DNA of 64,000 nucleotides from Dicyema japonicum (taxonomy: Eukaryota > Animalia > Dicyemida): positions 298,049 to 362,048 of the forward strand of contig RDEW01000016.1 of NCBI GenBank assembly GCA_011109175.1, written 5' to 3'. This document shows positions 5,291 to 60,084 of the stretch, in pieces. A model generated the notes under the pieces. It ran no database searches and was not told the DNA's origin. It was given only the letters and a program-made list of their open reading frames with translations. The position numbers were made by a program, and so were the translations under genes. Numbering within the stretch: the stretch's first letter is position 1; each line of letters starts with the position of its first letter.

Positions 5291-5999
5291 TTTATGTTGT
5301 TGTTAATAATAATATCTACTTTGTCTAAGAATTCCTTATTGGTCTCTGTTTTCTTCTAAGAGGCATCATGTGATCTACATGTTTCAAAAGACCTCCAGTA
5401 ATTCGGGCTTTTTAAGATGGTTTTGGATTATCACATTAAATAAAATTCCTGAAAAGCTTATTGGTAAGTTAACAGAAAAAGATTTATAGAGTGATAAGTT
5501 CTCAGAGAAATATATGTCAATTGTACAAAATATGAAAAGAGTAGTATCAAGATTCGATGGATTTGATAAAACCTCTTCTTATTCAAGAGACGATGGGATA
5601 TCTGTTTCAAGATAAGGAGCATTACAAAAAGGTTGCAGCTATCATAAATCACAGTGATTTAAGACGTCTAACAGAAAGTAGACCTTTAAAAAGCAACACA
5701 ATATTTCTTCATAACTATTTCTTGAAAAAATAAACTCGTAGGTAGAAAAATCAGATTTGAATTGACTTTAAAAATAAATTGTGAAATGGAAATACAAAAC
5801 GGAAAAATTATAGTTCTTAGGGATTTCATAGATATTTTGATTTATTTTTGATAGCTTACAAAAATACTACTTATTTCACTCACGTGGGGAAATGCGTTTT
5901 TAATTCTGAGAGCTGCCAGCTTTGATAAAAAAACTCTTAGTAGTTGTTAATCGATATTATTATAAGATTTCTTGATCATAAACTCACTTAAAGTTTCCT

Positions 6000-7338: not shown

Positions 7339-9634
7339 TTAATACTTTTCCAATAACTTAGCCAATAATTCATTAATCTGTGAAACCATCATTTTGGGGT
7401 CATCACACAGTCCAGCATTGGCTAAAGCATTATCATACAACTGATTCAACAACATCACTGATAATGTCTCATCCTTGTCCCTCAATCTATGCATACTCAT
7501 CACTATGGGATGTCTTGGAGTCAATCTTTCAACAAATACTTTGGATTTATCTCCAACACTCCTTGAGTGAGCTGTTGCTTCAGTACAGTGTCCTTCTCTG
7601 TCAAGCTTGTCTTCAAAAAATGTCTGATAGCTCCCAAATCCTTCACATTAAGGACCGCTGGGTGGCTTTCGAGGACATTGGTAGTCCTGACATCTCTGAC
7701 TTTGTTTCCTAGGGACTTTTTCATCCACGTGGTCAAGGAAGTTGACTCCTCATTCGTCAATCTACTTCCATCTAAGGATAATTCTAATCTCAACCAACAG
7801 TCTCCACGTGTTTCCTATCGAAATTGTCCTCATCCACGATGCTCTCAACTGATTTCAGTGTACACGTGTCGAACTGAGCCAAATTCATTAAAACGAGTTC
7901 GTCATGCTGTTCTGTGCAAAGAAGAACCTCAGAATCTTTTCTTCGCATAGCCTCCATGTAAGGCGAGGATTCTGCTACAGTCCGACTAATTTTACACATG
8001 GATTCACTTTGGAGCCAAAAAATAGTAGATAGTACGAGATCCCCCAGTCATTCGATTTCTGTACTCTTCAAGACTTGTCTTTTGGCCGGCTGGTAGTTTG
8101 GAAGACTCAAATCTGATTAGTTTTCCGATCTCTTCCTACAAGAGAGTCAAATAATGAATTCTACTCGTTCAGTCTGGTCAGAGGAAAGCACTAATCCCTC
8201 CCTGATAAACATCCCAAAGTCTGAGTAGAACTGCAGGTAGTCTTCTGGTTCTTCCTTCGACTTGATCTGCAAGAACTTAACAATCTTCATGGCCAATGTT
8301 GACTTGATCTTCGAAATGAGCACGTGGTCCTGTAGCATCTCCCGGCTGATGTTCAGAGGAATGTCTTCACAGTTGACCACGCCTATAAATAACGACCCCA
8401 CGTGGATACCTTTGAGAAATCTTAGCCAACGAGGAAGAATGTTCTTGGCCTTCTCCATAATCATGACCTTTCTGCAGTATAGACTTACAGCAACGTCTCC
8501 GTCACGTGCCAAATCCACCAAGGCTGAGAATTAGTTCAGAACAAACTAGGTTTGTATTTGGGTACATAAAGTACAGCACTCATGCACGTGGGTGCCTCAG
8601 TTCTGAACTGATAGGTAAACCTAGGTCCCAGACTCTCAGAGGTCCCTCCAGAAATGTAGCGAAAGAAATTGGTATGGTCGTCCATAGAGACTTTCTTAGG
8701 ATCGGCCAACCAAATGGGCTGAAATTAAATAAAATAAAGAACTTCAATCAAATCAAGTCTTATCGTTCACGTAGATCGGAAATGTAAAGAAATTGCAGTA
8801 CTTTTTAACAATTTCTAACAAAATATCAAATCACAGCAACCAATTATCTTCTCTGGCTTGGAGAACTCCAAAGCTGTGTCCCTTAGTTCGATGTTGACCA
8901 ATGTTCCCCTGTTGACCCCCTCAGCCTCTGCCAAACTGAACTCTCCTGTCCTAAGGAATAAGTCCTATCAAATACCCGTCGGATTGCCAGCAGTAAGCGA
9001 CAGATCCCGGCTTGTAGGAGCGGGAAAAAACAGAGACCCGAGACCCGGTAATAAAGGAAGAGTAGAAACCGACGCCAAACTGACCAATCAGCTTTTCTGA
9101 GGAGAATGAGTCGAGTTTTTGAGCAAATTCTTGTGACCCCGATTTAGCGATGACTCCAAGATTCTTCATAAGCTCATCTCTGGTCATTCCGATGCCAGAA
9201 TCCTGATATTGACTCAAACGAGTACTTGTATGCTCAAAGTCTTCTTCTCGGGGTCACAGAATATGTTTATTTGGAGGGGAAGTTCGGGATTAGTCATTTC
9301 TTCACCAGAAGAACTCATAAAGCGCAGTTTTTCTAGAGCATCACTGGAGTTGGAGATGAGTTCTCTGAGGAAGACCTTAATTTACTACATTTATGACCTC
9401 TTTGTCTGAATAGAGTGAATTTGCTATTATATTGAGGAGTTTGGTTGTTTCCGTTTGAAATGGGTTATGTTCGGGTTGGCCTACCACTGTTGGAGATGAG
9501 TGGACTGCACGAAAAAGTGTGAGGGGATAAAATGTTGAAGGTAATCTTACTGTGATGATAATAAAATTGCTACTCCTTGAGAAATTTCGTGATAGTAAAA
9601 ATAGTCTCTTTGAGATTTCACGTGTTGAAAACAT
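7339..9634 (-). CDS. TRAP1: Mitochondrial Hsp90 TRAP1/Hsp75; 12 exons, 11 introns of 22-29 nt; one apparent 1-nt deletion near 8757
   Basis: N-terminal presequence-like segment then [21 protein letters not shown]|[84 protein letters not shown] introns at 9376-9397, 9203-9225, 8951-8975, 8815-8840, 8719-8742, 8524-8546, 8383-8409, 8136-8164, 7986-8007, 7772-7794, 7514-7539. Confidence 0.95.
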
Positions 9635-9719
9635 TGGAAATTTTAAATATAATTTATTTTTGTGACTTTAAATTTTAATTAAATATAAATAAAAATTGTT
9701 TACTTTATTCGATTCCCAG

Positions 9720-9945
9720 AATGGATTTTTTTAGGCATGTTGTCCGCTCTGGTTCCCTGGAAAAAGCAATATTACTGGGAAGAAAAGACCTGGCCGACCG
9801 AGGACTCGGTGGCTGTCTACGGTGGAAGACGTAACGGGAATACTTATATCAAGGCTACTCCAAATTGCAACGGATTGGGGAGAGTGAAGGAAACTCCTTC
9901 ATGAGATCTCCAAGGGTCGGACACGACTTAATTGGACAACATAAC
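9720..9945 (+). mobile_element. 3' end of RTE (BovB-like) LINE
   Basis: LEKAILLG.KRPGRPRTRWLSTVED...ISKGRTRLNWTT, typical RTE C-terminus. Confidence 0.75.
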
Positions 9946-10304
9946 TTAACATTCGATTCCCGCACCACTACCTTCTGTTCGAAGGATTTCGTACTTTTCT
10001 GTCCTTTCATAAATCCTCAGAGTCGTGTGTTGATCTACCTGTCTCAGGAGACGCCAAATGCCCGGCCAGCATCCAAAAAGGATCAATCATCTCACTATTT
10101 TTCCAACAATGGCCAATTATAATAAATAGAATAAGTTTCCCTCCAACAGTGGGAATTGGATATACCTCAATTATACGTTAATCACTCTTTATTTTGTTCG
10201 GTAAATAACCAAACTTCATTTTAATATTTCAGTGCTTTCTTGGGTTTATTAATTTTAACTTATCATCAAAAAAAACCTCATTCTATAAGTGAATGAAGAA
10301 GCCC

Positions 10305-10560
10305 CTACTTCATGACTATTTCCTCTCAAAATTACTAGCAAAACTCGCTCAAATAACCAGCGACACTCGCGAAGATCATCACAATGTCGGGAAATATGAC
10401 TCCCAAGTCGATTCAGAAATTTCAGTGTAGAGATCCCATAACACCATTAGTCTCTATAGTAAGAGGAGTTTAAGTAAGAGTATCACTCCATCGAATAACT
10501 TAGCATAGTTCTTGTTGCCGACGTTTCGGGTCTCATAGTGGCCGAGTAGTATATGGAAGA
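10305..10560 (-). mobile_element. 3' remnant of CRE-clade element, related to 95-375
   Basis: ..DDLRECRWLFERVLLVILRGNSHE; nucleotide similarity to 270-360. Confidence 0.7.
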
Positions 10561-11199
10561 AGCCTTAAAATTAATATTGTTACTACTAATAATTATCTCT
10601 AATTACTACGATGTTGTTTGAGTGGTTGATAATTTTAATAATGTCGATGTTCTTATCATACTCTCAGTCTGTCTAGTCTACACCGTGCACGACCTCAGTA
10701 AACTACGGAGACGTGCGAGGAGGAAAGTTATATAGAGAAAACTGGGAGAACAGATAGTGAAGACTCTAAGTATTCATAAACTTATGGGTAACGCGGGAAT
10801 ACATTTAACTTATCTCGTTCTAGAAAAATTTAGATCTTGTTCTACCATAGAATAGGCTTACGAGTATTAAGAGTTTACTTAACAAAATGCTTACAATATT
10901 AGGTAACCTCATCACACAGTCACAACTAATCAAAAAGGAAACCATCTAGTGTCCAAAAATCACTCATTTTTAGACGCAAGAGTTTTCACAATCTTTATAA
11001 GTGGATTATTATTATAACCCCAGGATCACTGGGTCAAAGAGAAAGAAATAAGAGTTCTCATAACTAAGTGATTCCAGACCGACGAGGGAGAGGACGAGAA
11101 AGCGGAGTGGAGAGTCAAGCACTGCTCTTCTTAACGCACAAACATTTTACCAATGGATTTAATATAAATAAATAAAATTATTCCAAAGACCAAGGGTGA

Positions 11200-11475
11200 A
11201 ACCAAACTAACTAATTCCTTAATCCTGATGAGTTCATAAAAACCTTCACACAAGATCAATGATTCAGAAGAATGTTTGGGGAGCTGAAGTCGATTCTAGA
11301 ACTCTTAGCCGGACAACGAAATTGTCTCACGGTGGAATAAATAATTAGATTCTTTGGGACGCCAGTGGACATCGGGCGTCTCTTTAGTAAAGTGGATCCA
11401 ATGACGCCATTAGAGGGAAAGAAGATAAACTTTTAGCCAATTAGTCACATAGCACTACATGGTGCCACGCAGCTT
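11200..11475 (-). mobile_element. LINE 3' end with (TTAG)-like tail, homologous to 49865-50075
   Basis: Shared aaccaaactaactaa tail and gggcg..tc...aa.gtggatcca core. Confidence 0.55.
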
Positions 11476-11589
11476 TGGCCAGACAGGAGTATCAAGTGTA
11501 GATACTTTCACTGATAATCTTTTTTTGATAATTTTATATTATAATTCTACTTATTGTTTTTTTTTAAATTATAATTTCAAATTTTCAAA

Positions 11590-12011
11590 ATGAGTGAGGT
11601 GGCAGAACCGCGTTTCAGAATAAATGGCTCAATGATAGACAATTTCATAGGCAAACAGATATGTCTAATAGGCAACGTGATTAGAGTTATTCCTTACATG
11701 TTCACTGTAGACTGCTGCTAATCAGAGATCATTCGTTATGAAAACCTCCGACAACTATGACGTCACAGTTTTACTTCAACAACCAGTATATTAGTGTGAT
11801 CACACAGCTGAGTGAACCATTGGATGGCATTATTGAGTTATGGGGAATAGTCAGCAGTGAGAGACACGTGGTCTGTGATAATTATGTAGTTTTCCCCAGA
11901 GAAGATGTCGAGAAATTTGGTAATGATTGTGTTTACTGAGATGTTAAACTGTATGACCAGGTTGTGGGAATGTTGGTGGACAACAGTCAGTTCTACTACG
12001 CACGTGCTTAG
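11590..12011 (+). CDS. RPA3: Replication protein A 14 kDa subunit; introns 11686-11710 (25 nt), 11786-11807 (22 nt), 11920-11940 (21 nt)
   Basis: Spliced product MSEVAEPRFRINGSMIDNFIGKQICLIGNVIR-TAANQRSFVMKTSDNYDVTVLLQQP-LSEPLDGIIELWGIVSSERHVVCDNYVVFPREDVEKF-DVKLYDQVVGMLVDNSQFYYARA*, colinear with RPA14 OB fold. Confidence 0.9.
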
Positions 12012-12089
12012 TTAATTTGTAAAGTTTGTTTATTGGCTTTGCTTTTAAGAAATGACTTTATTGCTGTATTTGTAAATAAGAGACAAATG

Positions 12090-12800
12090 AGTTGTTAATG
12101 TATCCTCAATAATGCATCCATCTCACTGTAACCCACGTGTCCATGTCAGACATGTTTGTATAATATCGAAATACGTCTAAATCTGTAACAAAGTAGTTCT
12201 ACAACGTAATTATCCACGTGGCTAAGTTTATAATTATCCATAGGATGACGTACAGTATAAATACCCACGTGTACATATTTGAATTATTATAATGTATTTT
12301 TCACAATTCCCTATTGAAGTAACTGAATTATCGCACGTGCCTATACTTTATGCAAGATATCGACTCCATTGTGTAGTCTTTTCCCGGATAAAGGGATCGG
12401 AACAGAAAACTTTCATAAATCGTGTATGTTCATCTTTAGAGTATTACCACTTGACATATAAGATTTAAATTCCAGGTTTTTTGCGCTTATGCAAAGAACC
12501 AGGAAACCCACTTGTGGAAATGGTTACACCTGCAGAAATGAACGGGAACTAATTAACACGTGCAAAGTCACCATATCAAGCTGAGAGGAATATTAGCGGA
12601 TGTAATGTAGGCTTACTACCACTTATATTTGAAGGACAGTAAGCTAAGGTACTTCTATGTTTTGTAATCAGCATAATGATTTAATTACACAAAACATGAA
12701 TAACATTGAGGGACTACAACATTAATGAGAATACTACAAGGAACTATTATGCACCACTACTGAACTGAGGCTGCACAACTGTTCGTTATGGAGACTGTCA
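12090..12800 (-). other. Possible unannotated micro-intron gene
   Basis: Candidate 22-24 nt GT-AG introns join an open stretch EHTRFMKVFCSDPFIREKTTQWSTCDNSVTSIGNCEKYIIIIQICTRG; no complete model or homologue recognised. Confidence 0.3.
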
Positions 12801-19022: not shown

Positions 19023-20267
19023 ATGAGTTTATATCTGCTAATTTTGCTGTGTTTAACAACCAGCATATGTGATCTGTCAATTTTCGACGAGAATAGGACT
19101 ATTCTTAGTATTGTGAAGTCCCAACCAGCTTCCTTTGGTTCATCTTATACTCAGGTTGTTGGATCACTAGTGATACCTTCCAACGTCTACTTTTGTGCAA
19201 AAATCCCTTACAATAAGTTGAACGATCATTCCATCTCCTTGATTGAACGGGGCCACTGTGATTTTCTGGATAAGGTTATCTATACCTAACCTACGTGTAG
19301 GTCTTGAACGCACAGTTGGCTGGGTTTGTTGGGGCTATTATTTATGATCCCAACTCCATGGACCTATTTGAAATGCATTCTAACAGTCCCTATGCTTTCC
19401 TGGTGAAAATTCAGTCTTTTTTTGTTGGACACTATGGCTATAAGGACCTACTTATGTACAGTAACAGCACTAAGTTAGTCTGGCATAGTTTAAGCGCGAA
19501 TTTGTCTGTCTTATTGATTTATTAAAATATTTTCTTATTTATGATTTTAGATATTGGGTTATGTCTGATCCAGAGGGAAGGTCACAGTTTGAGTATTATA
19601 TATTTGTGTTCGCCTGTGTGGTTGCCGTTTGCATATTAGTCTTTATAGCGTTTCTGGTGGGTTGTTGGTGTAATCTTTTAGATCACCAAGCTTATTCGTT
19701 ATTACTACGAACAATGGAAAGCGAAACTTCCCGCCAGACAGATTAAGAAACTGCCTGTTATATTATACATGAAAGGTATTTATAATTTTTCCCATCCTTC
19801 CATTTTTATAGTGTTAGAATTACCTTTATTTCCCGCTCTTTTCATTTTTCCATTGTTTTAGTCATTTTCTTTTTTATTTCTTTGAATTAGTCATTTTTAT
19901 TTCTCTTTGAAGTAGTCATTTCCTTGCTAATTTGCTTTAATGTTTTTAGTTGAAGATCAGTATTTTGACAGCTGTGCTATCTGCTTGGAGGAGTTTACAG
20001 AAAGGACTAAGGTTCGTGAACTACCCTGCAGACACAGTAATTAATTTCTTAATGGTAGTATATCATGTTAAATGCATTGATCCTTGGCTTATCAAAGTCC
20101 ACAGACTGTGTCCCCTTTGCAAACAAGATGTGTTAGAACCAAACAATCGTCTGACTTCCAATGTGTCCGTTGATATGACACCCACGTGTCCTGTTACTAC
20201 CAACAGTGAAGTTGTTCCATCTACTATCATTCTACTAGAAAGTACATCCACAAATGAAGAACCGTAG
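19023..20267 (+). CDS. PA-TM-RING-H2 E3 ubiquitin ligase (RNF13/RNF167 family); introns 19275-19300, 19474-19550, 19657-19681, 19776-19949, 20037-20058
   Basis: Signal peptide MSLYLLILLCLTTSIC; PA domain (PASFG, ISLIERGHCDFLDKVLNAQLAG); TM YYIFVFACVVAVCILVFIAFL; RING-H2 CAICLEEF..LPCRHIYHVKCIDPWL..CPLCKQ. Confidence 0.92.
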
Positions 20268-21179
20268 ATTATATTTTACTAACAATTATTATTTCGTTAT
20301 TCAAAGAGTTTTATAGCTCATTTACTCATTCTTACTAGATTTAACAACCACGTGGTCTAATGGCTGGTTTACAGTAATGTGGGTGGAAAATATAAGTTAT
20401 ATTACAATATTTGAGTTTTATTTTGATTGACCTTAATTATGACCTTGATATTTTTAATTCTCTTCCTTGTAGTATTAATTAATGGATTATAAGCAGTGAC
20501 CCTCTATTGGACTAATGCTCATTAACACATTATAATGTATATTCAAGAGATTCCTTTACGAGGGAATTCGTTATGCTCTAAACATTCCGTCAAACTACAA
20601 AGTTATGCTGGTGTAGTATACCATCATAGCCGTCCATCTGGTGTTTTAATAGCCCTCAAGTGGACGTGTCCTCATTATGGAAACATTACAAGACAACTAC
20701 TTTTATGTGGACATACAAAGCGGTGTCCGTGCTGTAACCAAAAAATAAAAATTAACAACAAAGTAGTGCAGTATGCTCAATCACGACTGTGTTGGGCATA
20801 CTGAGGTTGTGAGGTTTATTCATTTACTTTTGTTCGTCAAGTAGGGGATATCACATTCAAAAAAGCTGTGGATTCGTAAAATGCAGTCTGTTAATGAGAA
20901 TGCAAATATGTGACAGTAACATAGTAATAAAAACCTCAATTGTTGTACATCATAATAAACTAAAAATTATGCTTGTGAATTGTCGTTAGACATATAACTA
21001 TCATAGAACTTTACTCACCAAGAGTGCTTGCAAATAATGGAAGTAGATAAGAAGTGGATGTACTCTTTTTTCTCAAACTGAGGATGATTGACATATGGAA
21101 AATATATATTATTCCTTATATTATTAAATTGGATTTTATCTTCAATGAATTCACATACCTGAGACTGTTGGAAGTAAAT

Positions 21180-31562: not shown

Positions 31563-34500
31563 CCTTCCTCGCCTGCCTGTTCGCCAGCCTCCTCAGGCAG
31601 GTTCGATTCTGGTTGCTGAAACAACTCCGAGAGCGCTTGTCCAATTTAACCCTCTGCCCATATGGCATCTCAGGGCTCTGCCTCCTATACTCCAGTGTCA
31701 GGCTTTCAAGGGTCCGCTTTAACACAGTGGACTGTAGATAGGCCTGGAGCTTCCTATCTACCCCCAACTGCTTCAGATAACCCTTGTGGTACTTTGTTGC
31801 AATTCCTTCCCACGTCATTACTATAGGAATAACGAAGACCTTGCAACCAAGCATCTGCCCCATCTCGTTTGCAAGAAAGTCATACTTCCTTTTTTTCTCC
31901 ACCTCCAGAGTCTGCAAACGGTCTTGAGACGTGATGCCAACCTATATGATAAGGACTTGGCCAGACTCCTTATCGTGTACTACAATGTCCGGTTTATTGT
32001 GCTTGACTAGCACCGAGGTACGGATAACACTGTCTACCTTAATTTGGACCCTGGTGTTCTCTACTACAGATTGCACCTTATGAGTCCGCAACTTTCTGGT
32101 GTGGCGAATACCATACTTATTGCATAGTAGAAGATGAAGACTCCTTACTACCTCGTTGTGCCTCCACACATAGTCGTGGCAGAGCATGGATCCACATCGA
32201 GTGGCTAAATGATCAACCGACATGCTCCTTGACTTACAGTGGGGACATGTATTTGTTGATCGACCCCAAAAAATATTGCGGTCTTGCATATACGTGTACA
32301 ACGCCTCCGATCGAGGTGAGTTGTCACCGTATTTTAGCCATATTGTCGACGACTTAAGGTCGACATGTGGGTTGTCCAATGCTCTGAAGAGGACCTTATG
32401 AAGGCTTTTTAAGTTGATCTTTTCCATCAAATTATTATATTGTAATTCGATCAACGCCTTCACATTTACTAGCCCACCATCATCAACACCATACTTAGCA
32501 GACAAAAAAGGTCTGATAGTGCCTAGGTGGGTTGCCCGTGTTTTCTCGGTCGTTATTATGGCGTGCTTCCTAGCAGACACACTTGACCCAGCTATCAGGG
32601 TGTCGTGCATTCGCATTAGGATACGCTCACTTAGTTGGACTACTCCACACAGTCCACGGCCGAATTTATCACGGGGTAAATATAGTCTCTCCTTATTGGC
32701 TGCCAACACATGGACATGGTTCTCTCTGAGTACTCCACGGATCATAACATCCATCTCATCATACTCTTTGGGCTCAAACTCCACAACACCTATGTAGTAG
32801 TTTAGCAGCGAGACAGCATACTCATTTAATGCTAGGAACAAATTCCTTGCATTTAGAGACGTCTTACACAATAACGCTGCTCTTTTACGGATGCCTTCAG
32901 TAATTCGTCGCTTTGTCGCAGGCATTTTAAGGGACTTTGGAGATTCGGTAACACCCAGATACTTATATCCTTCGTGTTCCTCTAGGACTCTTACTAACTC
33001 GCTACATACTTGCGTGTTATTCGCAGACTTTGAATAATTCAAATCTAGTCCTATACTCTTAAAGAATTCACTGGCACAGACCCCCATGGAGTAGAGCTCC
33101 TCGGCTGTTCGAGCATACATCTTCAGTCATCGATAAAGAGAAGGTGATTTGTACTGAAACAACCCCCTCACAATGAACTGGTATTTGCTCAAACCGGTCA
33201 TTGAGGCGGCGACTCAATGGCTCCAAACAGAGAACAAAGAGCAGCGGAGACATGCTATCCCCTGAAGGATTCCCCTCTTGAGTTTTGCCTATTATTATAG
33301 TTCAGATGAATACTCCACCTATTCATCACAGCCATTACAAAGCTGATGAACCACACAGCCATACACAGACTGTGTAGGCACTCGACAAGGTAAGAATGAT
33401 CAACTGAATCGTAAGCCTACTTTACATCCACCCACATAGACAAAAGTGAGTTTCCGTGAGACACATAAAGGCATTTTTTAATCAAAGCCTGCTCTTTTTC
33501 CCCCTGACAATTTCGCACAGTACCCAACTGATTCTCAGAGAGAATCCCATTTGTCTCTACAAATCTCCTGACCTCATTAGCCACCAATTTGGTCATCAGT
33601 TTATACAGGGTTGGCATGCAGGTTATCGGTCGATAATCTGCAGCAGACTGGGGGTTGTCCAGCTTTGGGATCAAATAAGTTGTCCCTGTGCATGCCCAAT
33701 CAGGAATCGTTTCCGGGTTAGTGATGCTTTTCTGTAATACACGACACATAGACTCGTGCAATGAAGTGCATCTTTTGATAAAGAAATTATAAACTTTATC
33801 GACCCCGGTCGTTTTCCAATCAGGGAGATGTCTCACAACCGCCTCAAATTTCTTGCGAAAATCGAAAATTCCGCCAAGAAAGGAGCAGCGCTGTACGGGA
33901 CATTCCACGCATTTCCTCTGCGTGGTTTAGCCTCCCACGTACTACCCCATGTGGAAAGCATTTCCGCGTCCTGCTGGGAACATACACTATGGCCAATTTC
34001 GTGTAGGCGACGGTAAAACAATCTGCGATTGAACTCAAACAGATTATTTTCTCTCCTTCTCTTCGCCGACTTTCATGTGTATAGAGTTTCCTCTTATACA
34101 CCATTATTGCCCTTTCTAACTCCACCTTTGCACTCCTCAACTCTTTGAGGTCCCATTTGGGAACACGGAGTTTACTAATTAACCCCTTTACTATAGGCGG
34201 TGCTTTTCCTCTAACACCTCTCGCCACACTACTTATGTGCCCCTCCAGTTCTTCCAGCTCAGTCTGTCTCCAAGCAATCTTGGCACAGATCTGCTCCCTC
34301 CATTTACTGGGTGGTCTGGGCTTGTAAGTCAACTCTTCATAGGTGATCTGTGCTGCATACAGCACTAGGGAGATGTCACCCAGTGACCCTACTGGCTTAG
34401 CCTCCACTGCATAAGCCACAGCCTTATTGATACAGGTTAACACTACTTTGTTAACCATACAATGAAGGATCTTGCGGGTAAATCTACGGTCTTCAAGTGG

Positions 34501-34960: not shown

Positions 34961-35829
34961 TTTGATACTTAACAAAATTTGATTAAAATTAAGTTAAAAA
35001 CATTAAGTGCACGAAATTAATAAGGTCATATTTAATTTTTAAGATTTTAAAAGTTATATATTTAAGGTCATATTTTAATCATTTTTAAGTCATATTTGTG
35101 GTTGCCATAGATATCAGTATTGAAATATCCTCCAAATAGGCGTCATAAAGAATAGTTTTTTTGGTGGCGTCGGTGATACTTAAACGAACAAGTCTGATAA
35201 CCCATCCCTCATTCTTTCCATTCGAATGGACAAGTATACCTTGAATCAAAAAGTAGGTCCCGAAAAGGATAGTCAACCTTTTCCAAAATGCTTTGTCACA
35301 ATTTTCACTCCGACTGACGTCAACTAAATATTAAACCGAATATTAAACACTGGGTTCTTCTAGTCTCTAAAACCCCAAAAATCCCTGTGGCTTATTTACG
35401 ACCAATGCTTGACATTTTCCTCTCACGTGTTCCACGTTGTCGCAACGGCAAAAAGGAAATTGAAATCATTTTCTGAGCTATAATGTCTTCATTAATTTAT
35501 AATAGATCTAAATTGAGGATACTCAACCCTGTATCAAAATATCTCACGACAAAGTATCAACGAACGTGATCAGGATTTTTAAAAGTGGATTCGACTTCTG
35601 GTGAGTAGTTTATAACGAAAAACCAGCAGTTTGCGCATTAAATTATGAAAACTCAACGGAATCGCCAAATATCTCGTTCAAGAATCTCTGAAAATACAAG
35701 AATTGATGTTTTGCAAATGTGTTGTAAATTGTTATAAAAATAAGCATTATTAGCCCATTTTATAAATCCACACTAAAATTGAAGTTTTATTTTTTATTTT
35801 TAAAATCCCAAAACCACCAAGAAAGAAAG

Positions 35830-39060: not shown

Positions 39061-39339
39061 TTTGATAAAATACTAGCGTGGGATTAATTATCATCATTCA
39101 CTATGTTGCCGCGTTTAATCAAGAATGACATTGAAATCACCTCATCACTTGAAGACCTTATCCGACAAATGGAAAGGGTTTTGCATCCTTGTACAGGCAG
39201 TCCAACTCCCAACAATGCCAGGACGTTTCTTATGAGAAGAATACATCACCCTTTTTTAATTTCTATTCCCCGAACCATCCCGCCCACACCACGTGAGGAG
39301 CACCTAAATAGAAGTTGGACTTAACATCTTAATACTCCA

Positions 39340-42173: not shown

Positions 42174-42492
42174 TTTCAATTTAAAAAAATGATTTTATAA
42201 CGATTTTCAACTTAAACACGTGGCATTTAACGTTTTTTTAATTTTATTGTACATTTAAAGTATTTAAAAATAAAATAATTAATACTTGACTTCAGATATA
42301 TCTAATTTTTTACGTGGCGGTAACATATGCACGGCTTAATTTTCATTATAAAAATAAAAAGTGGAAAAATCCCATTTTTAATGGATGAAATAAAAATATA
42401 AAAAATTGATTAGGTTGGCTAAAATTTAAAAAGCATGTTTGCTTTTTAAAATAACAAAAATTATCAAATAAAAGTAACATTTTGCTTATCTT

Positions 42493-42894
42493 ATGAATTA
42501 CTTGACCCTGGCGGTAACATTTGCACGAGGCTGTATATACAACAAGACATGTAGACATGCATTAGATGTACATTTTATCAAACATAAGCAAATAATCGAC
42601 AGAGATAAAATCAAGTGGAATACCTCTCTGCAAATTTTGTTGAATAAAATAATAAGAATTTCTGATGTGAAGGAAGAAAGTAACAATCCACAGAAATGTA
42701 CTTTTGTAATAGAAGGATTGCTGGGAATAATCCACTCTTGCCAAATTGTAGAGCGTGCGGCTGTGATCTACACTTTCTTTATTAAGAAGATTACGTCTCT
42801 CCATGATCATATATACCAAGAAATAGAAAAGGTGATAAAAAATTTATTTGATAAAAGTTTGATAAATCGTACACTTTCAATAATAAAGAAATAA
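42493..42894 (+). CDS. Hypothetical protein (133 aa), orphan
   Basis: 133 open codons in very AT-rich DNA are unlikely by chance; no family recognised. Confidence 0.45.
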   Translation: MNYLTLAVTFARGCIYNKTCRHALDVHFIKHKQIIDRDKIKWNTSLQILLNKIIRISDVKEESNNPQKCTFVIEGLLGIIHSCQIVERAAVIYTFFIKKITSLHDHIYQEIEKVIKNLFDKSLINRTLSIIKK

Positions 42895-43009
42895 AACGAA
42901 TATATAGAAATACAAATAATACAACACAGCCCCAAAAAAGGCTTTTATAGCGTGAGTTATAATTTTTATTGATGATGGTTAACCACGTTAAAATATTATT
43001 ATTATTGAA

Positions 43010-44030
43010 CCAAAAAACACCGTCAAATCCAAAATAAACAAAATTCAGGTGATCCTTCCATCAACAGTCTCCGCATCTTTTCTCGGTGTTCCGACTGCGT
43101 TCCGGTGCATTTTCGATATGGACGGGGTCCGCATACTCGACTCCTTCGCAGGGGCACTGTTCCAGTCGCCTCTATCGTATTTTCTAGGTTTCTAGGCAGG
43201 ATTTCCACTCGGGAATATTTCCTTATGAGGTTTGCTGCCTTCACTTGAATGTTTCATATCTTGTCCAAATTCGTTGCAAAAAGGTTAGATCCCCAGATAT
43301 TACATGCGTATCCAATTGTAGCCTCGATGAACTGTTTGCATATGACATCCAGACCACTCAGATCTTTTTTGTCTCTTAGGTTTCCCAAGAACGCCTTCAG
43401 GAAGTTGATTTTCCTCGTACATGTCAATAACACATTACCAATTGTTTTGTAAAGGTTAAGAAAGTGTCAAAGTAACTCCTAGGATCTTCTGACATTTGAT
43501 ATATCTCCCATCCAGTGTGACGTCAATTGATACTTTTCCTAGTCTTCTGTTTGTCGTGAATAGGGTCAACACCGACTTCTCCGGGCTAGCAGTCAATTGA
43601 TTTTCCCAAAGCCATAAACTTAATTTATTCAGATTGTCCTGTATTCTTTCGTTGCTTCCACAATACTCATATACCTCGAGGCAATGACTACATCATCAGC
43701 ATACGTTAATAATATGTCATTGTCCCACTGAGGGAATGGCAAGTTATCCATACAACGATAAACAAGAGAGGAGATAATGGGGAACCCTGGGAAACGCCAT
43801 TTACTAATAGTCTCGATACGGAACATCGATTGCCATAGTGTACTGGTCGACCACTCAAGAAATTTCCCATCCACAATTTCAGGTTCGCGTCAATGTTCGA
43901 CGAATATATTTTGTGCGTGATAATCATCCTCGAAACCGAGTCAAAAGCCTTCTGGATATCAATTGAGCATACAATTCGTCTTTTTCTGTCCTGGTTTTTT
44001 GTTAAGACCATCTGTTATGAACTTCTTTAA
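43010..44030 (-). mobile_element. Ingi/Vingi-like LINE RT and 3' end, degraded
   Basis: SIDIQKAFDSV, NGVSQGSPLSPLLF, TYADDVVI; 3' end resembles 25460. Confidence 0.85.
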
Positions 44031-44299
44031 TGTATTTAGGTGTGTTATAGTTAGGGGTGATGAAGTTAATTTTAATTTATTACCCCAAAAACACCAATAG
44101 TTAATCTCTTGAAATTAGGTGATTCCGACAATCCTGATGAGATTTCTCAGCTTCTCCTGATGTTGGACTTTTGACCCAACACAGTCAGGGTACGGGCGGG
44201 GGACAGTGTTCGTGAGTAGACCAAATGGGGTGATGNAAATACAACCGACAATCAGTTATGGGTGTGAAGATATTAATATTAATACAATAAAATTCAAGT

Positions 44300-45080: not shown

Positions 45081-46656
45081 TTACCTAAATTCTGTTTTTG
45101 TAGAGTTTCAATAAACATTGGAGAAAAAGTTTTGCTTTCGTATCTACTTATCTTTCATTTTTATAAGAAAAACTCCAAATGTTTATTTTTTTATTTTTAT
45201 GTGGAGTATCCGAATGAATTTTCTAACATTTGTTGACGGTGTAATTATTGTAGCCGAGACAGTTACGTGGTTATGGAAAAATCAGAAGTCTGTTTCAATT
45301 ATAAAATTATTATTCACAAAGCATATTGTACATTAGTGGCTTTGGAAACCATGATTAATGTTGGACTCACAAATATTCTGTTACATTAGTCGACACAATT
45401 GCATCAAATAGTTTTTAACTTAAACTGTTTTGAGGGGAGTTGCTATACATTTGTTGTTGACAGGGAATAAATGAAATGATAAATTCCTTAGTGAAACTAT
45501 AATTCCGACAGATTTAACAGAAACACTTTCTTCTCCCAATGTTCCGACCGAGTCTACACAAGTACGTGTTTGAAAAAAAACCAAACTAACTCATCCTCAC
45601 GTGTTGCAGTGTAACCTTCATCCAAACACAGTGATCCAGAAGCTGAGGTCAAAACAATAACTCGTTGGCAGGGAACAAAATAGTTTCTCAGTGGAATGAA
45701 GAGATGGATCAGGCATTTGGTGTCTACTGAGTAAGGTAGATACAGAAGGAATCAGTAGCCACATGGTACCACGAGGAATGTATAGTAGAAGAACAAAGTA
45801 TTTTATTTTAAAACCAAGAATCACAGCCATATTAGATGGAATACGTAGCCGTCAGGTGATCCAGTCTTTCTTCGTCCTGAGATTCGATGCACGTGTTAGT
45901 AATTGGATCCGCCTATTAATAATTTAATTTTGTGACAGCACGTATATTTTAGTGGTACAGTTTAGTGTGTCAATTCTGTCGGCTGCCTTTACCTCATATT
46001 TATTTGATCAATGAAAATCACAATTGTAAAATGTATGGATTTATTAGAAATGAGTCATTATAGCAAAAGCGAAAATTGTTCATTGTTATATAAGATTTTG
46101 TCATTCTCAGAAATTGCTCATTAAGACTTTTATACTCAAATGGATAAACTACCAAATAAATGAAATTTAATAAAATTCTATTTGTACATTCAATTGGTGC
46201 ATGGACGATATTCTCACTTTGAACGAAAGACTGATCTCCTGATAAGAATGACTGATTTATTAACCTCAGACCTGTATTTGGCTGATAATGCTTCGTCTGA
46301 ATGTTTCAACCCGACTAATACTTATTTTGGGAATTTTTGATTCAATCATGAACGACATTCTCACTTTGTGCAAAATTGAATAATTCTTTCATTTAGCAGA
46401 TTTTCAGACACCGCGCGCCCAAGTCTGGACAACATTGAATAATCTTAAACTCATTATTGACAAGGCATTGGAAGTTCTTTTAGGATTACTCTATCAGATG
46501 ATGTTTCTAACCATAAAATCTTTAGATAATTGTAGAAAATAATCAGATTTCTTTAATGTTAACGAAATAAACAACTTGCGGTTTCCTAACACTTAATTCA
46601 AGCATATCTTGAACGCACAGGTTTGATACTGAAGCAGGATTATGCAAAATTAGTCC

Positions 46657-46730
46657 CACGTGCTTTACTACCAAAGCGAGCGAAAAAAATATTCGCTTAT
46701 CAATGACGTCATTGTTGCATATAAATATAA
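46657..46730 (+). promoter_or_regulatory. Candidate promoter: E-box CACGTG (46657), perfect palindrome CAATGACGTCATTG (46701-46714), TATA-like (46719-46730)
   Basis: Three canonical elements within 95 bp upstream of ATG 46750. Confidence 0.45.
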
Positions 46731-47779: not shown

Positions 47780-48050
47780 GAGTATGTCAATCTATAAATT
47801 GTAGGATCTCTCTATGAATTTGTTTAATCAAGCTAGAGATTTGATTTGCCTAAAGAGATTATACAGTCAAACATGTAGAAACGCTCTCCACGATCTTGAA
47901 AACTTTCAGACAGAGAACCCATCTATTGAATCCGTGTTTTCTTCTGTTACTTCAAATTCTTGATTTATCTTTTTAGCACGTGCATGCTTTCTCTGCTGTG
48001 TTGTGCTTGGTTGCTCAAGCTTTGCTTATATCATCTTTCCTTACAATCAT
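47780..48050 (-). pseudogene. Decayed bHLH transcription factor (H5-E9-R13, E-box type)
   Basis: ISKA*ATKHNTAEKAC[fs]RAKKINQEFE followed by a 28-nt GT-AG intron; TGA and TGC are each one C>T change from Arg codons. Confidence 0.5.
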
Positions 48051-56639: not shown

Positions 56640-57420
56640 TCTGCTAAATTCCAGGAATCCTCTGTTCCGTCACTCTGCATGCTTTTTTCCGTGCAATCGC
56701 GATCTTCTCAGAATTGGTCAAAAGGATCCCTGGAGTAAAATGCCACACAATTATAATTGTTAATTTAACATTCCTTCTCAGGATAGCGAGCGAGATTCTT
56801 TCGAATAACCAGCAGCGCTCACAAGGTCTCTAATCGTGTAGAAATACGATTCCCAGACGCTTCAAGAATACCGCGTCCCAAACGCAATGGAACTAAACGT
56901 CTCAATGGTTAGTGGAACGAAAAAAATTATTGGGTAGGAACTCGTACTTTGCCCGTTTTAAACTTTCACTCTTCTCAGCGGCAGAACAGGCTCCAGAGGC
57001 ACGTGTCGGTGCAAGCTAGGTCTTAGACAAGAGGTTTCCTGTCTTTAGAATGGAAAATTGTAATCCCATCTGGTAGTTTCACGTCATTCCTGCAAAGAAC
57101 GACTAGTTTGAGAATAAAGGAGTATTCGGCGGCGTCAAAAGATCTCCTAACGGCTTCGTTCAAGGTCATATGTCCTGGAAATCTTCCCGTACTCTTCCTG
57201 CAGGAGAGAAGGTGTAGGCTCTGGTCTCCGCATCGGCACAGATGTGGAGTGGAAGACAGACTTTTAATCCCAGTCGTATTGAGATCCCAATACGGATGCA
57301 TTGATCATTCAGAAAGGTACTTAAAATTCCATTCGAAATGGCGTTGAGCCAGGCACCGCTATCGAAAGACGCCCCCCAAACAAACAGGCATGGCGATGTT
57401 ATGTAAATAGCACTCGCAGA
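56640..57420 (-). mobile_element. CRE-clade element 3' part (degraded, two abutting tails)
   Basis: CRCGDQSLHLLSCRKSTGRFPGHMTLNEAVRRS, KLPDGITIF, FFVPLTIETF, LFERISLAILRRN. Confidence 0.8.
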
Positions 57421-59064: not shown

Positions 59065-60084
59065 TCAATCATAACTTTTACGAATTCCAATATCAGTCAT
59101 AACCAATCGTTGACATATTTCACTGTTTTCTCCATATTTAGTTAAAACAAATCCGTATGTCTTATCTCCATTAACTTTACTGAATTTCCCTAGAAGGTTG
59201 TAATCCATAGTTTCCTTTAGTACACAATTCTTGTATAGGTTCTCTCTTGTGTTTTTTATTTTATCTAAATCATCATTTAATTCTTTTTCATTAATTTTTG
59301 AAATTTCATTCCGAAAGTCTTTAAGGAAAAATTCATATACCGCAAAATCAACATCGTTCCATTTTAAAATTAATTCCTTTAAGGTTTCATTAACTTTGGG
59401 GATTTTTTGTGCATTTAACTGAAATGATATCAAATCTTGGATATCCCAATGAAGGTACTTTTTTAGAAGAAGTAGAGATAAGTCAAAGAAATCAGCAATC
59501 AATATCAAATTAAAACTTTTTTTTACTTCCGATAGAAAATCATCAATGTCCTTCTGTGAATAACCATAACGTGAGTTAAATCCAAGCATATATGACATTG
59601 GGTTCCTCATTCTATCATCTAGTTGGGTTTGATAATAAAATTCTGGATTTTTGAAGAATTCTGATATTTCACGTGTTTTTGATACGTAATAATTATAAAA
59701 TGAAATATATTGACGAAAGGGATTCCTCAAAATTGTAAAGAAAAATGCATTTGGTTTTACAATTTCCTGAATACTTGTTTTATTAAATCTTGTATGAAAG
59801 AATAACATGTCAAATGGTTTCATTTCCACATGTCTGACATTTTTTGCACTAAAAAATGATGTTGATTTACCAAAATGAGTTCCTTCATTCGATGGTACAG
59901 CTATTGCCAAATTATGACTACGAGCATATCGGTCGAGAATGTTGACGATAGAAGAGCTCGCACATTTTAGAGTCTTTAAAAAGACAATTGTGGACCTTTT
60001 GTTAGGTTTATATCTTTCTGAGATCTTCAATACAAGTAGAACTAATACAAATAGAATTACAAGACAGAATATACGATTCCTCAT
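59065..60084 (-). CDS. Galactose-3-O-sulfotransferase (Gal3ST/cerebroside sulfotransferase family), 339 aa, intronless type II membrane protein
   Basis: N-terminal TM (IFCLVILFVLVLLVL), IVFLKTLKCASSS (5'-PSB), FHTRFN, FTILRNP..QYIS.YNYY (3'-PB), FNLILIADFFDLSLLLLK..L.W, WNDVDFAVY.FF. Confidence 0.92.
   Translation of the reverse strand: MRNRIFCLVILFVLVLLVLKISERYKPNKRSTIVFLKTLKCASSSIVNILDRYARSHNLAIAVPSNEGTHFGKSTSFFSAKNVRHVEMKPFDMLFFHTRFNKTSIQEIVKPNAFFFTILRNPFRQYISFYNYYVSKTREISEFFKNPEFYYQTQLDDRMRNPMSYMLGFNSRYGYSQKDIDDFLSEVKKSFNLILIADFFDLSLLLLKKYLHWDIQDLISFQLNAQKIPKVNETLKELILKWNDVDFAVYEFFLKDFRNEISKINEKELNDDLDKIKNTRENLYKNCVLKETMDYNLLGKFSKVNGDKTYGFVLTKYGENSEICQRLVMTDIGIRKSYD

Follow-up and report, generated by a model that had tools for sequence, protein, structure and literature searches.

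Short palindromes that occur far above expectation, within and between genes and regardless of reading frame, are known from the highly iterated palindrome HIP1 (GCGATCGC) of cyanobacteria. What HIP1 does is still under debate; proposals include selection, biased repair and an association with DNA methyltransferases (PMC5861425, PMC4390886). Here, we describe a comparable behaviour of the palindrome CACGTG in a stretch of 64 kb from the genome of the dicyemid Dicyema japonicum (contig RDEW01000016.1; hereafter the window), where it is concentrated in and around the genes for TRAP1, the mitochondrial HSP90, and RPA3, the 14-kDa subunit of replication protein A. A likeness to HIP1 had already been proposed from an initial inspection of the letters (the sequence-only reading), and the statistics do resemble those of HIP1, as the word exceeds expectation 4.7-fold and is found in all codon phases, in an intron and in non-coding DNA. 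The two nevertheless differ in several respects. HIP1 is an 8-mer of cyanobacteria, whereas CACGTG is a 6-mer in an animal nuclear genome with introns and transposons; its sites form islands of about 0.8 kb, with no measured long-range periodicity and no known methyltransferase, and its excess (4.7-fold across the window, about 20-fold in host genes) compares with 15- to 300-fold genome-wide for HIP1.

CACGTG is also the class-B E-box, the cognate site of basic helix-loop-helix leucine-zipper (bHLH-Zip) factors. Clusters of such E-boxes or G-boxes (Myc/Max, Mlx, USF and TFE; Cbf1 and Pho4 in yeast) have the identical core, a palindrome read by a dimer; TRAP1 and RPA3 themselves serve growth and housekeeping. 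However, known targets carry one or a few variant-tolerant sites near the transcription start, whereas here each island has seven perfect sites, distributed over coding exons, an intron and 3' flanks; these overrule the choice of codons and of some amino acids and are accompanied by no enriched variants. The periodic An/Tn clusters (PATCs) of Caenorhabditis elegans are a DNA feature of germline genes that separates self from foreign DNA and prevents silencing (PMC4947018). They represent the closest precedent for the idea of self-marking, but they are intronic A/T tracts with a 10-bp period that act via DNA shape, and not a discrete palindrome that also occurs in exons. In the HS4 barrier insulator of the chicken beta-globin locus, USF-bound CACGTG attracts histone modifiers of the activating kind and stops heterochromatin from spreading. 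The arrangement described below is similar in that two divergent host genes, set in transposon-rich DNA, have one island on each of their outer sides; HS4 differs in using a single site in a compound element, and a chromatin boundary at the islands would be suggested purely by analogy.

A pattern search identified 27 CACGTG sites in the window (eight in TRAP1, seven in or after RPA3 and 12 elsewhere), in exact agreement with the count and coordinates given by the sequence-only reading. Dinucleotide-preserving shuffles of the window (n = 100) contained 5.7 +/- 2.5 copies with a maximum of 13, and 0/100 reached 27. The local excess claimed earlier was likewise recovered: the span 7726-12562 holds 15 sites, while 0.5-0.9 are expected under order-0 to order-2 models. 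When the 27 sites were placed at random in 20000 trials, 15 sites within 4.9 kb were never obtained, and seven sites within 900 bp had a probability of P = 5e-5 (scan statistic). Outside this span the excess is modest, with 12 sites in 59 kb compared to about 5 expected, so that the overall excess is uneven (17- to 30-fold in two islands against about 2-fold elsewhere). Among the palindromic hexamers of the window, CACGTG is the most over-represented relative to the dinucleotide expectation. The whole analysis rests on these 64 kb, the 27 sites and gene models built in this study.

The sites are unchanged in four independent DNA runs from 2019 and in a transcript contig from 2017, and a sequencing or assembly artefact was rejected on this basis. 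About 22 variant positions are listed in 3.6 kb of unique DNA; none falls inside a CACGTG, which is uninformative given an expectation of 0.55. The window has a G+C content of 36%, introns of 22-29 nt and many LINE-like elements; for the D. japonicum genome, 36.7% G+C, 49% repeats and ultra-short introns have been reported (PMC6736024, PMC13644364).

The TRAP1 model was assembled from open frames and GT..AG introns (Table 1) and matches solved TRAP1 structures with E values from about 1e-8 down to 8e-29. The 2017 transcript contig (1851 nt) covers positions 7431-9549 with 272 gapped letters, and its loss of depth per bin fits eleven introns of 22-29 nt. Two bases (TC on the + strand) are absent from the window at position 8757, which shifts the TRAP1 frame, and this point was masked with N in the model. 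The TC is present in all contigs of DNA runs X2 and X3 and in part of the depth of run X1; since the protein with both bases restored reads through and aligns with orthologues, the loss probably reflects a rare allele or a mistake made during assembly or polishing.

The seven sites of island 1 (about 0.15 expected) are separated by 79, 58, 458, 78, 104 and 82 nt. Across the gene, the seven exonic sites fall in all three codon phases, encoding H-V twice in phase 0, T-R-E and A-R-D in phase 1, and P-T-C, D-T-C and T-T-W in phase 2. The eighth lies in a 27-nt intron, which coincides with an exact gap of nine residues relative to zebrafish TRAP1 (after RFLKG) and with a matching loss of depth in the transcript contig. 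About 1 kb in the 5' half of TRAP1 is without a site; only three compatible positions exist there, of which one is used, and this scarcity partly accounts for the gap, so that "island" serves as a descriptive term only. Near site 7805, two alternative 23-nt GT..AG introns (7794-7772 and 7837-7815) both restore the frame; homology favours the former, which places the site in an exon as H-V, and the depth data are compatible with both. The observed/expected ratio of CpG amounts to 0.60 in TRAP1 (7339-9634), 0.76 in the transposon block and 0.91 between 35 and 64 kb, and 8/60 CpGs of TRAP1 lie inside CACGTG. A loss of gene-body CpG with the motif CpG spared would fit protection by a bound protein or a modification-linked process.

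Coding constraints do not account for these sites. Synonymous-codon shuffles of TRAP1 (n = 20000) yielded a mean of 0.57 CACGTG and a maximum of 4, compared to the seven observed (P < 5e-5). When all hexamers are ranked under this codon-preserving null, CACGTG deviates most (z = 8.8), and among the 64 palindromic ones it alone stands out clearly, the next being CCTAGG with an uncorrected P of 0.035. Considering only positions at which the amino acid sequence permits the motif, TRAP1 uses 7 of 10 (0.61 expected from codon usage), RPA3 2 of 3 (0.22), the galactose-3-O-sulfotransferase gene 1 of 3 (0.27) and the RING-finger open reading frame (ORF) 1 of 2 (0.11). Together, these four host genes use 61% (11/18) of their compatible positions with 1.21 expected, whereas ten transposon ORFs use 0/15 with 1.01 expected (Fisher P = 1e-4, on a slightly different tally). 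Codon usage and amino acid composition were thus rejected as the cause by both the shuffles and the per-position expectations. The sequence-only reading had argued the same from the presence of sites in all three phases of TRAP1 (now 2/2/3 across phases 0/1/2) and inside the 27-nt intron (site 8399), and each of these details was borne out by the gene model built here.

Effects beyond codon choice were also apparent. TRAP1 contains 10 motif-compatible amino acid contexts, where 3.8 are obtained from its own shuffled composition (P = 0.004) and unrelated proteins show 3.9 per 676 residues. At five of the six exonic sites in the coding body, leaving aside the one at the start codon, the vertebrate TRAP1 residues are incompatible with the motif, as in D-H-V/E-S-A, D-T-C/D-K-K, T-T-W/M-A-W and P-T-C/P-L-N (D. 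japonicum/vertebrate). One of the five, site 7805, lies beyond the aligned stretch, and the orthologue there is what we take to be the human TRAP1 sequence. Motif pressure has thus shaped the protein sequence of TRAP1, and not only its synonymous sites.

RPA3 is identified through its exon 1, which matches the Pfam family Rep_fac-A_3 with an E value of 0.002, under the curated cut-off. Its two coding sites are 11865 (H-V, phase 0) and 12001 (A-R-A, phase 1, in the final codons). In island 2 the gaps between the seven sites measure 136, 133, 81, 51, 68 and 223 nt, and about 0.16 sites are expected. The 0.7 kb after the RPA3 stop alone contribute five sites against 0.105 expected under a first-order model, and CACGTG is tied for the commonest hexamer in this stretch. 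A further protein-coding gene beneath island 2 was rejected, as 12012-12700 contains no ORF of more than 58 amino acids, and so was a non-coding RNA gene, for which no Rfam match was found. The excess therefore acts alike on exons in three phases, on an intron and on non-coding DNA.

TRAP1 and RPA3 are divergent, and between their starts lie two very high-copy repeats (9653-10014 and 10920-11462) with about 70-700 times the contig depth of their flanks, neither of which holds a CACGTG. Many variant joints occur within 11185-11396. One contig of run X1 (depth 93 compared to about 900) joins 11745 to 11872 and thereby skips 126 nt of RPA3, dropping the 22-nt second intron together with 104 coding bases, with loss of the frame; the right edge of the joint abuts CACGTGG at 11865-11871. 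Such a joint might stem from a paralogue, from a minor allele or from the assembly process.

The excess is specific to the complete palindrome. Counted on both strands, CACGTT, CACGTA and CACGTC occur at 1.0-1.2 times expectation in the window, ACGT at 0.9 times and CpG at an observed/expected ratio of 0.84, and a general excess of CpG, ACGT or the half-site was rejected accordingly. All one-mismatch variants in the islands number 5 compared to 7.6 expected, whereas perfect sites number 15 compared to about 1, giving a ratio of 15:5 where chance would produce about 1:26. Decayed or weak variants in the islands, as judged from this one-mismatch count, are not above chance, and recognition is therefore all-or-none. 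Specificity for the full palindrome points to double-stranded DNA read by a dimer.

Immediately next to the core, T is depleted (7/54 half-sites, P = 0.002) and C enriched (19/54, P = 0.002), in a small sample that is partly codon-constrained; the bias is roughly symmetric about the core, and CACGT outside the palindrome shows neither the avoidance of T nor any such bias. The smallest distance between any two sites is 51 nt (random placement within islands, P ~0.006, post hoc), and such a lower limit suggests the binding of bulky complexes. By eye, the spacings showed no helical phasing. Any two sites have only 1-3 flanking bases in common and the islands show single-copy depth, and a dispersed repeat, tandem unit or duplication as carrier of the motif was rejected on these grounds. 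Taken together, we conclude with high confidence that CACGTG is a DNA-level signal read as a palindrome and not a by-product of coding.

Table 1. Genes, islands and CACGTG sites in the 64-kb window of D. japonicum (positions within the window).
Feature	Position	Strand	Details
TRAP1 (mitochondrial HSP90) gene	7339-9634	-	12 exons, 11 introns of 22-29 nt; 8 CACGTG
Island 1	7726-8590		Sites 7726, 7805, 7863, 8321, 8399, 8503, 8585; six exonic (all phases), one intronic
TRAP1 27-nt GT..AG intron	8383-8409	-	Holds CACGTG 8399; in-frame if unspliced
Start-proximal TRAP1 CACGTG	9619-9624		Codons 4-6 (T-R-E), 10 nt past predicted ATG
RPA3 (replication protein A 14-kDa subunit) gene	11590-12011	+	4 exons, three introns; 2 coding CACGTG
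Island 2	11865-12562		Sites 11865, 12001, 12134, 12215, 12266, 12334, 12557; last RPA3 exons into downstream DNA
Non-coding stretch past RPA3 stop	12012-12700		Single-copy, 34% G+C; 5 CACGTG
CACGTG	5881-5886		Unclassified DNA
RING-H2 finger ORF	19950-20264	+	zf-RING_2 E = 7e-4
CACGTG (P-T-C)	20183-20188		In RING-H2 finger ORF
CACGTG	20349-20354		~90 nt past RING-H2 ORF
CACGTG	35424-35429		Unclassified DNA; ~460 nt beyond 5' end of R2/NeSL-like element
CACGTG	39290-39295		Unclassified DNA; 78-aa open frame, no Pfam match
CACGTG	42217-42222		Just outside 3' side of degenerate reverse-transcriptase element
Degenerate reverse-transcriptase element	~42300-44100	-	RVT_1 E = 6e-10 at 43709-44014
CACGTG	45598-45603		Unclassified DNA; opens a loose cluster of 4 sites within 2.4 kb
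CACGTG	45890-45895		Unclassified DNA
CACGTG (H-V)	46657-46662		Start of 146-aa open frame, no Pfam match
CACGTG	47977-47982		Unclassified DNA
CACGTG	57000-57005		Unclassified DNA
Galactose-3-O-sulfotransferase gene	59065-60084	-	Single exon; Pfam E = 1.8e-52
CACGTG (T-R-E)	59670-59675		In galactose-3-O-sulfotransferase gene

The distribution across sequence classes was compared for the window as a whole. Identified host genes (5.2 kb) hold 13 sites with 0.62 expected, DNA that bears reverse transcriptase or is present in high copy (20.6 kb) holds none with 2.6 expected, and the 14 remaining sites, including the five after RPA3, lie in 38 kb of unclassified DNA. The sequence-only reading had described transposon DNA as nearly devoid of the motif, which stands as a count, but the depletion of 0 against 2.6 expected is not significant; transposon DNA is therefore at or slightly below chance and not demonstrably depleted. 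Its further suggestion that the motif may mark genes as opposed to transposons fits the density in host genes but is not established, given transposons near chance and the 14 sites in unclassified DNA. Young insertions would be motif-free under any slow process.

Sequences from outside the window showed no such excess. The TRAP1 gene of another short-intron organism (L002; 48% identity within the segment used as query) is free of CACGTG over 2.3 kb, and a contig of Octopus sinensis, reached via a transposon ORF, has 3 in 21.7 kb compared to 2.8 expected. This ORF, an R2/NeSL-like reverse transcriptase (31942-33120, - strand), shares 70% identity along its entire length with an "uncharacterized protein" of O. 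sinensis (P0001) encoded on a 294-kb contig, and five further O. sinensis matches show 39-79% identity. The octopus locus analysed (L001) contains Pou/homeodomain and DEAD-box fragments and no CACGTG excess, and for these reasons it looks like octopus DNA rather than parasite contamination. As dicyemids inhabit cephalopod kidneys, the similarity could reflect a transfer of transposons between host and parasite.

With respect to the reader of the palindrome, a bHLH-Zip dimer is the best-supported candidate because CACGTG is its cognate site. We tentatively favour, at somewhat less than even confidence, the view that the islands are arrays of perfect E-boxes at which a dimeric protein of the bHLH-Zip type may mark or activate host genes. 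The reader would be a protein of two-fold symmetry, most likely a bHLH-Zip factor of the Max/Myc/Mlx/USF type, and host genes would carry dense arrays of perfect sites, with about seven sites to 0.7-0.9 kb of DNA and at least about 50 nt between neighbours, placed wherever they are tolerated (synonymous positions, weakly constrained residues, introns and flanking non-coding DNA). With many dimers bound, resident genes might then stay active or licensed in a genome of which transposons make up half and which encodes very few transcription factors. The identity of the reader, its occupancy and the effect of its binding are what we infer from the sequence, and the sites could be kept up either by selection or by molecular drive.

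The flanks bear on the kind of factor. CCACGTGG is the optimum of Myc/Max, whose sites are biased toward CCACGTG and away from TCACGTG, while the preference for a flanking T belongs to USF/TFE. The sites of the window show the same bias as Myc/Max and differ from T-flanked USF/TFE sites, which mildly favours a bHLH-Zip reader among the three mechanisms put forward by the sequence-only reading (bHLH-Zip binding, a methyltransferase target, and a signal for replication or elimination). Fourteen genes with HLH domains are listed for D. japonicum, making them the second-largest transcription factor family (supplementary table of PMC6736024).

Several observations weigh against such E-box arrays. 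Neither a bHLH gene nor a bHLH-bearing element was found in the 64-kb window. The placement at promoters and transcription starts that is expected of E-box clusters is not seen, as only site 9619 is near a start codon, and the others are found in the 3'-terminal 40% of TRAP1, in the final exons of RPA3 and in the DNA that follows. At ordinary E-box targets, one or two sites occur close to the promoter, in contrast to seven perfect ones in exons and 3' flanks, and arrays kept by selection usually include weaker variants, none of which is enriched here. Many redundant perfect sites would be hard to hold by selection in a parasite whose effective population is likely small, which favours drive over selection. 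Finally, the minimum-spacing test was chosen after seeing the data, and the flank tests are equally post hoc and based on 27 sites.

These points lead to the rival explanation that survives best, which we consider rather unlikely but a serious competitor. CACGTG could be a palindrome of the HIP1 kind whose perfect sites are steadily generated or retained through an enzyme or through repair, be it a CACGTG-specific methyltransferase (possibly of bacterial origin), a nicking or repair factor, or biased mismatch repair or gene conversion. Old resident DNA would then be saturated and young transposons would lag behind, and a role in transcription would not be needed. The sharpness of 15 perfect against 5 one-mismatch words in the islands speaks for this, as do the sites in non-coding DNA and the transposon ORFs at chance, which is expected of young DNA; a saturation of 61% combined with amino acid change is hard to reach by weak selection if the sites are redundant, and the parasite's population, which is likely small, points in the same direction. 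HIP1 itself shows the same statistics and has been tied to methyltransferases (PMC5861425, PMC4390886).

However, a methyltransferase gene or other enzyme of this kind was not seen in the 64-kb window. To our knowledge, no CACGTG-specific drive enzyme is known in animals. Conversion should deplete near-cognate words, whereas their number in the islands (5 compared to 7.6) is not significantly reduced. Drive also sits poorly with the unevenness of the excess, with the site-free kilobase of TRAP1 and with the avoidance of close spacing, which suggests bulky bound complexes. For HIP1, moreover, conservation was taken to argue for selection over biased repair (PMC5861425).

Four further explanations are much less likely than either E-box arrays or HIP1-like drive. 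It appears improbable that the arrays are targets, decoys, landing pads or by-products of mobile elements bearing a bHLH-Zip protein of their own. Site 42217 does lie just outside the 3' side of a degenerate reverse-transcriptase element, but no element in the window has a bHLH ORF, the ends of the R2/NeSL-like element do not adjoin a site, none of the 15 island sites (0/15) is located at a transposon junction, the islands are single-copy, and the exonic sites of TRAP1 stand in uninterrupted sequence that aligns with orthologues.

More improbable again is a signal at the RNA level, in which CACGUG is read by an RNA-binding protein, or copies pair with each other, for example to label the mRNAs of the organism as its own or to assist exon definition next to ultra-short introns. 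All TRAP1 sites (8/8) and the two coding sites of RPA3 are in transcribed sequence, the five sites downstream of RPA3 could belong to a 3' UTR, and a palindrome reads alike in genes of either strand. An RNA signal would not need a palindrome, yet only the full palindrome and no strand-specific half-site word is enriched, the flank bias is roughly symmetric, and sites occur alike in an intron, in exons and in probably non-transcribed DNA.

Even slighter is the chance that each CACGTG is a scar, that is, the joint left after excision of a germline-limited segment or transposon from somatic DNA. Elimination of DNA during development has been reported for dicyemids. The presence of perfect sites in every sequence class and codon phase recalls the excision junctions of ciliates, and the reference list of PMC6543705 includes papers on DNA elimination and circular DNA in D. 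japonicum. Excision scars were rejected because no residues are added relative to TRAP1 orthologues at the aligned exonic sites, where those alignable to solved TRAP1 structures show no insertion of two residues. In addition, sites that were already present would not exceed their expected number as a result of being cut; the joint from 11745 to 11872, the one listed joint that touches a site, is not site-to-site; and loose ends at sites are missing among the best-supported rows listed for the DNA runs, a weak point since contigs drop rare forms.

A local fluctuation, a codon or amino acid effect, a repeated element or a sequencing artefact can be dismissed almost entirely, for although the excess outside the span is modest, every null was rejected by a wide margin, no sequence is shared past 1-3 flanking bases, and the sites recur in independent runs including the transcript.

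Other words are also frequent in the window: GACACC, CGACAC, CTCCAC and CACCAC each reach 3-4 times their order-0 expectation with 44-51 copies, probably from repeated coding units or transposon copies.

Text searches of the literature revealed no paper pairing CACGTG with dicyemids, orthonectids or myxozoans, and no description of a comparable palindrome excess in the coding regions of animals. As far as these searches could find, iterated palindromes are unreported for animals. Genome-saturating palindromes that act independently of coding are known from bacteria (HIP1 and uptake sequences), where they have gone unexplained for decades, and an animal example would be new. The contributions of this window are the saturation of synonymous positions, the shift of amino acids, the lack of variants, the biases in flanks and spacing, and the transposon ORFs at chance.

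A wider, more speculative reading, on which we would place less weight than on the E-box arrays alone, is that D. japonicum possesses an animal counterpart of the bacterial iterated palindromes. One CACGTG-specific protein, either a bHLH-Zip factor that licenses genes globally or a modifying or repair enzyme of foreign origin, would have written thousands of perfect sites into resident DNA. The pressure would override codon choice and reshape proteins, and the sites would act as a hard-wired mark of "self" through which host genes stay active, or are retained, in a genome filled with transposons and with a minimal regulatory repertoire.

In the window, one six-base word takes 11/18 of the compatible positions in host genes and shifts residues of a conserved chaperone, which sets a force at the DNA level against selection at the protein level. 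Gene finders, codon-usage models and tests for selection applied to the D. japonicum genome need to allow for CACGTG. If the sites are maintained by drive, they would be one of the few documented animal examples of a bias in mutation or repair that is directed at a motif. If they are bound by a factor, they would reveal by what means a parasite with very few transcription factors distinguishes its approximately 5000 genes from a genome that is half transposon.

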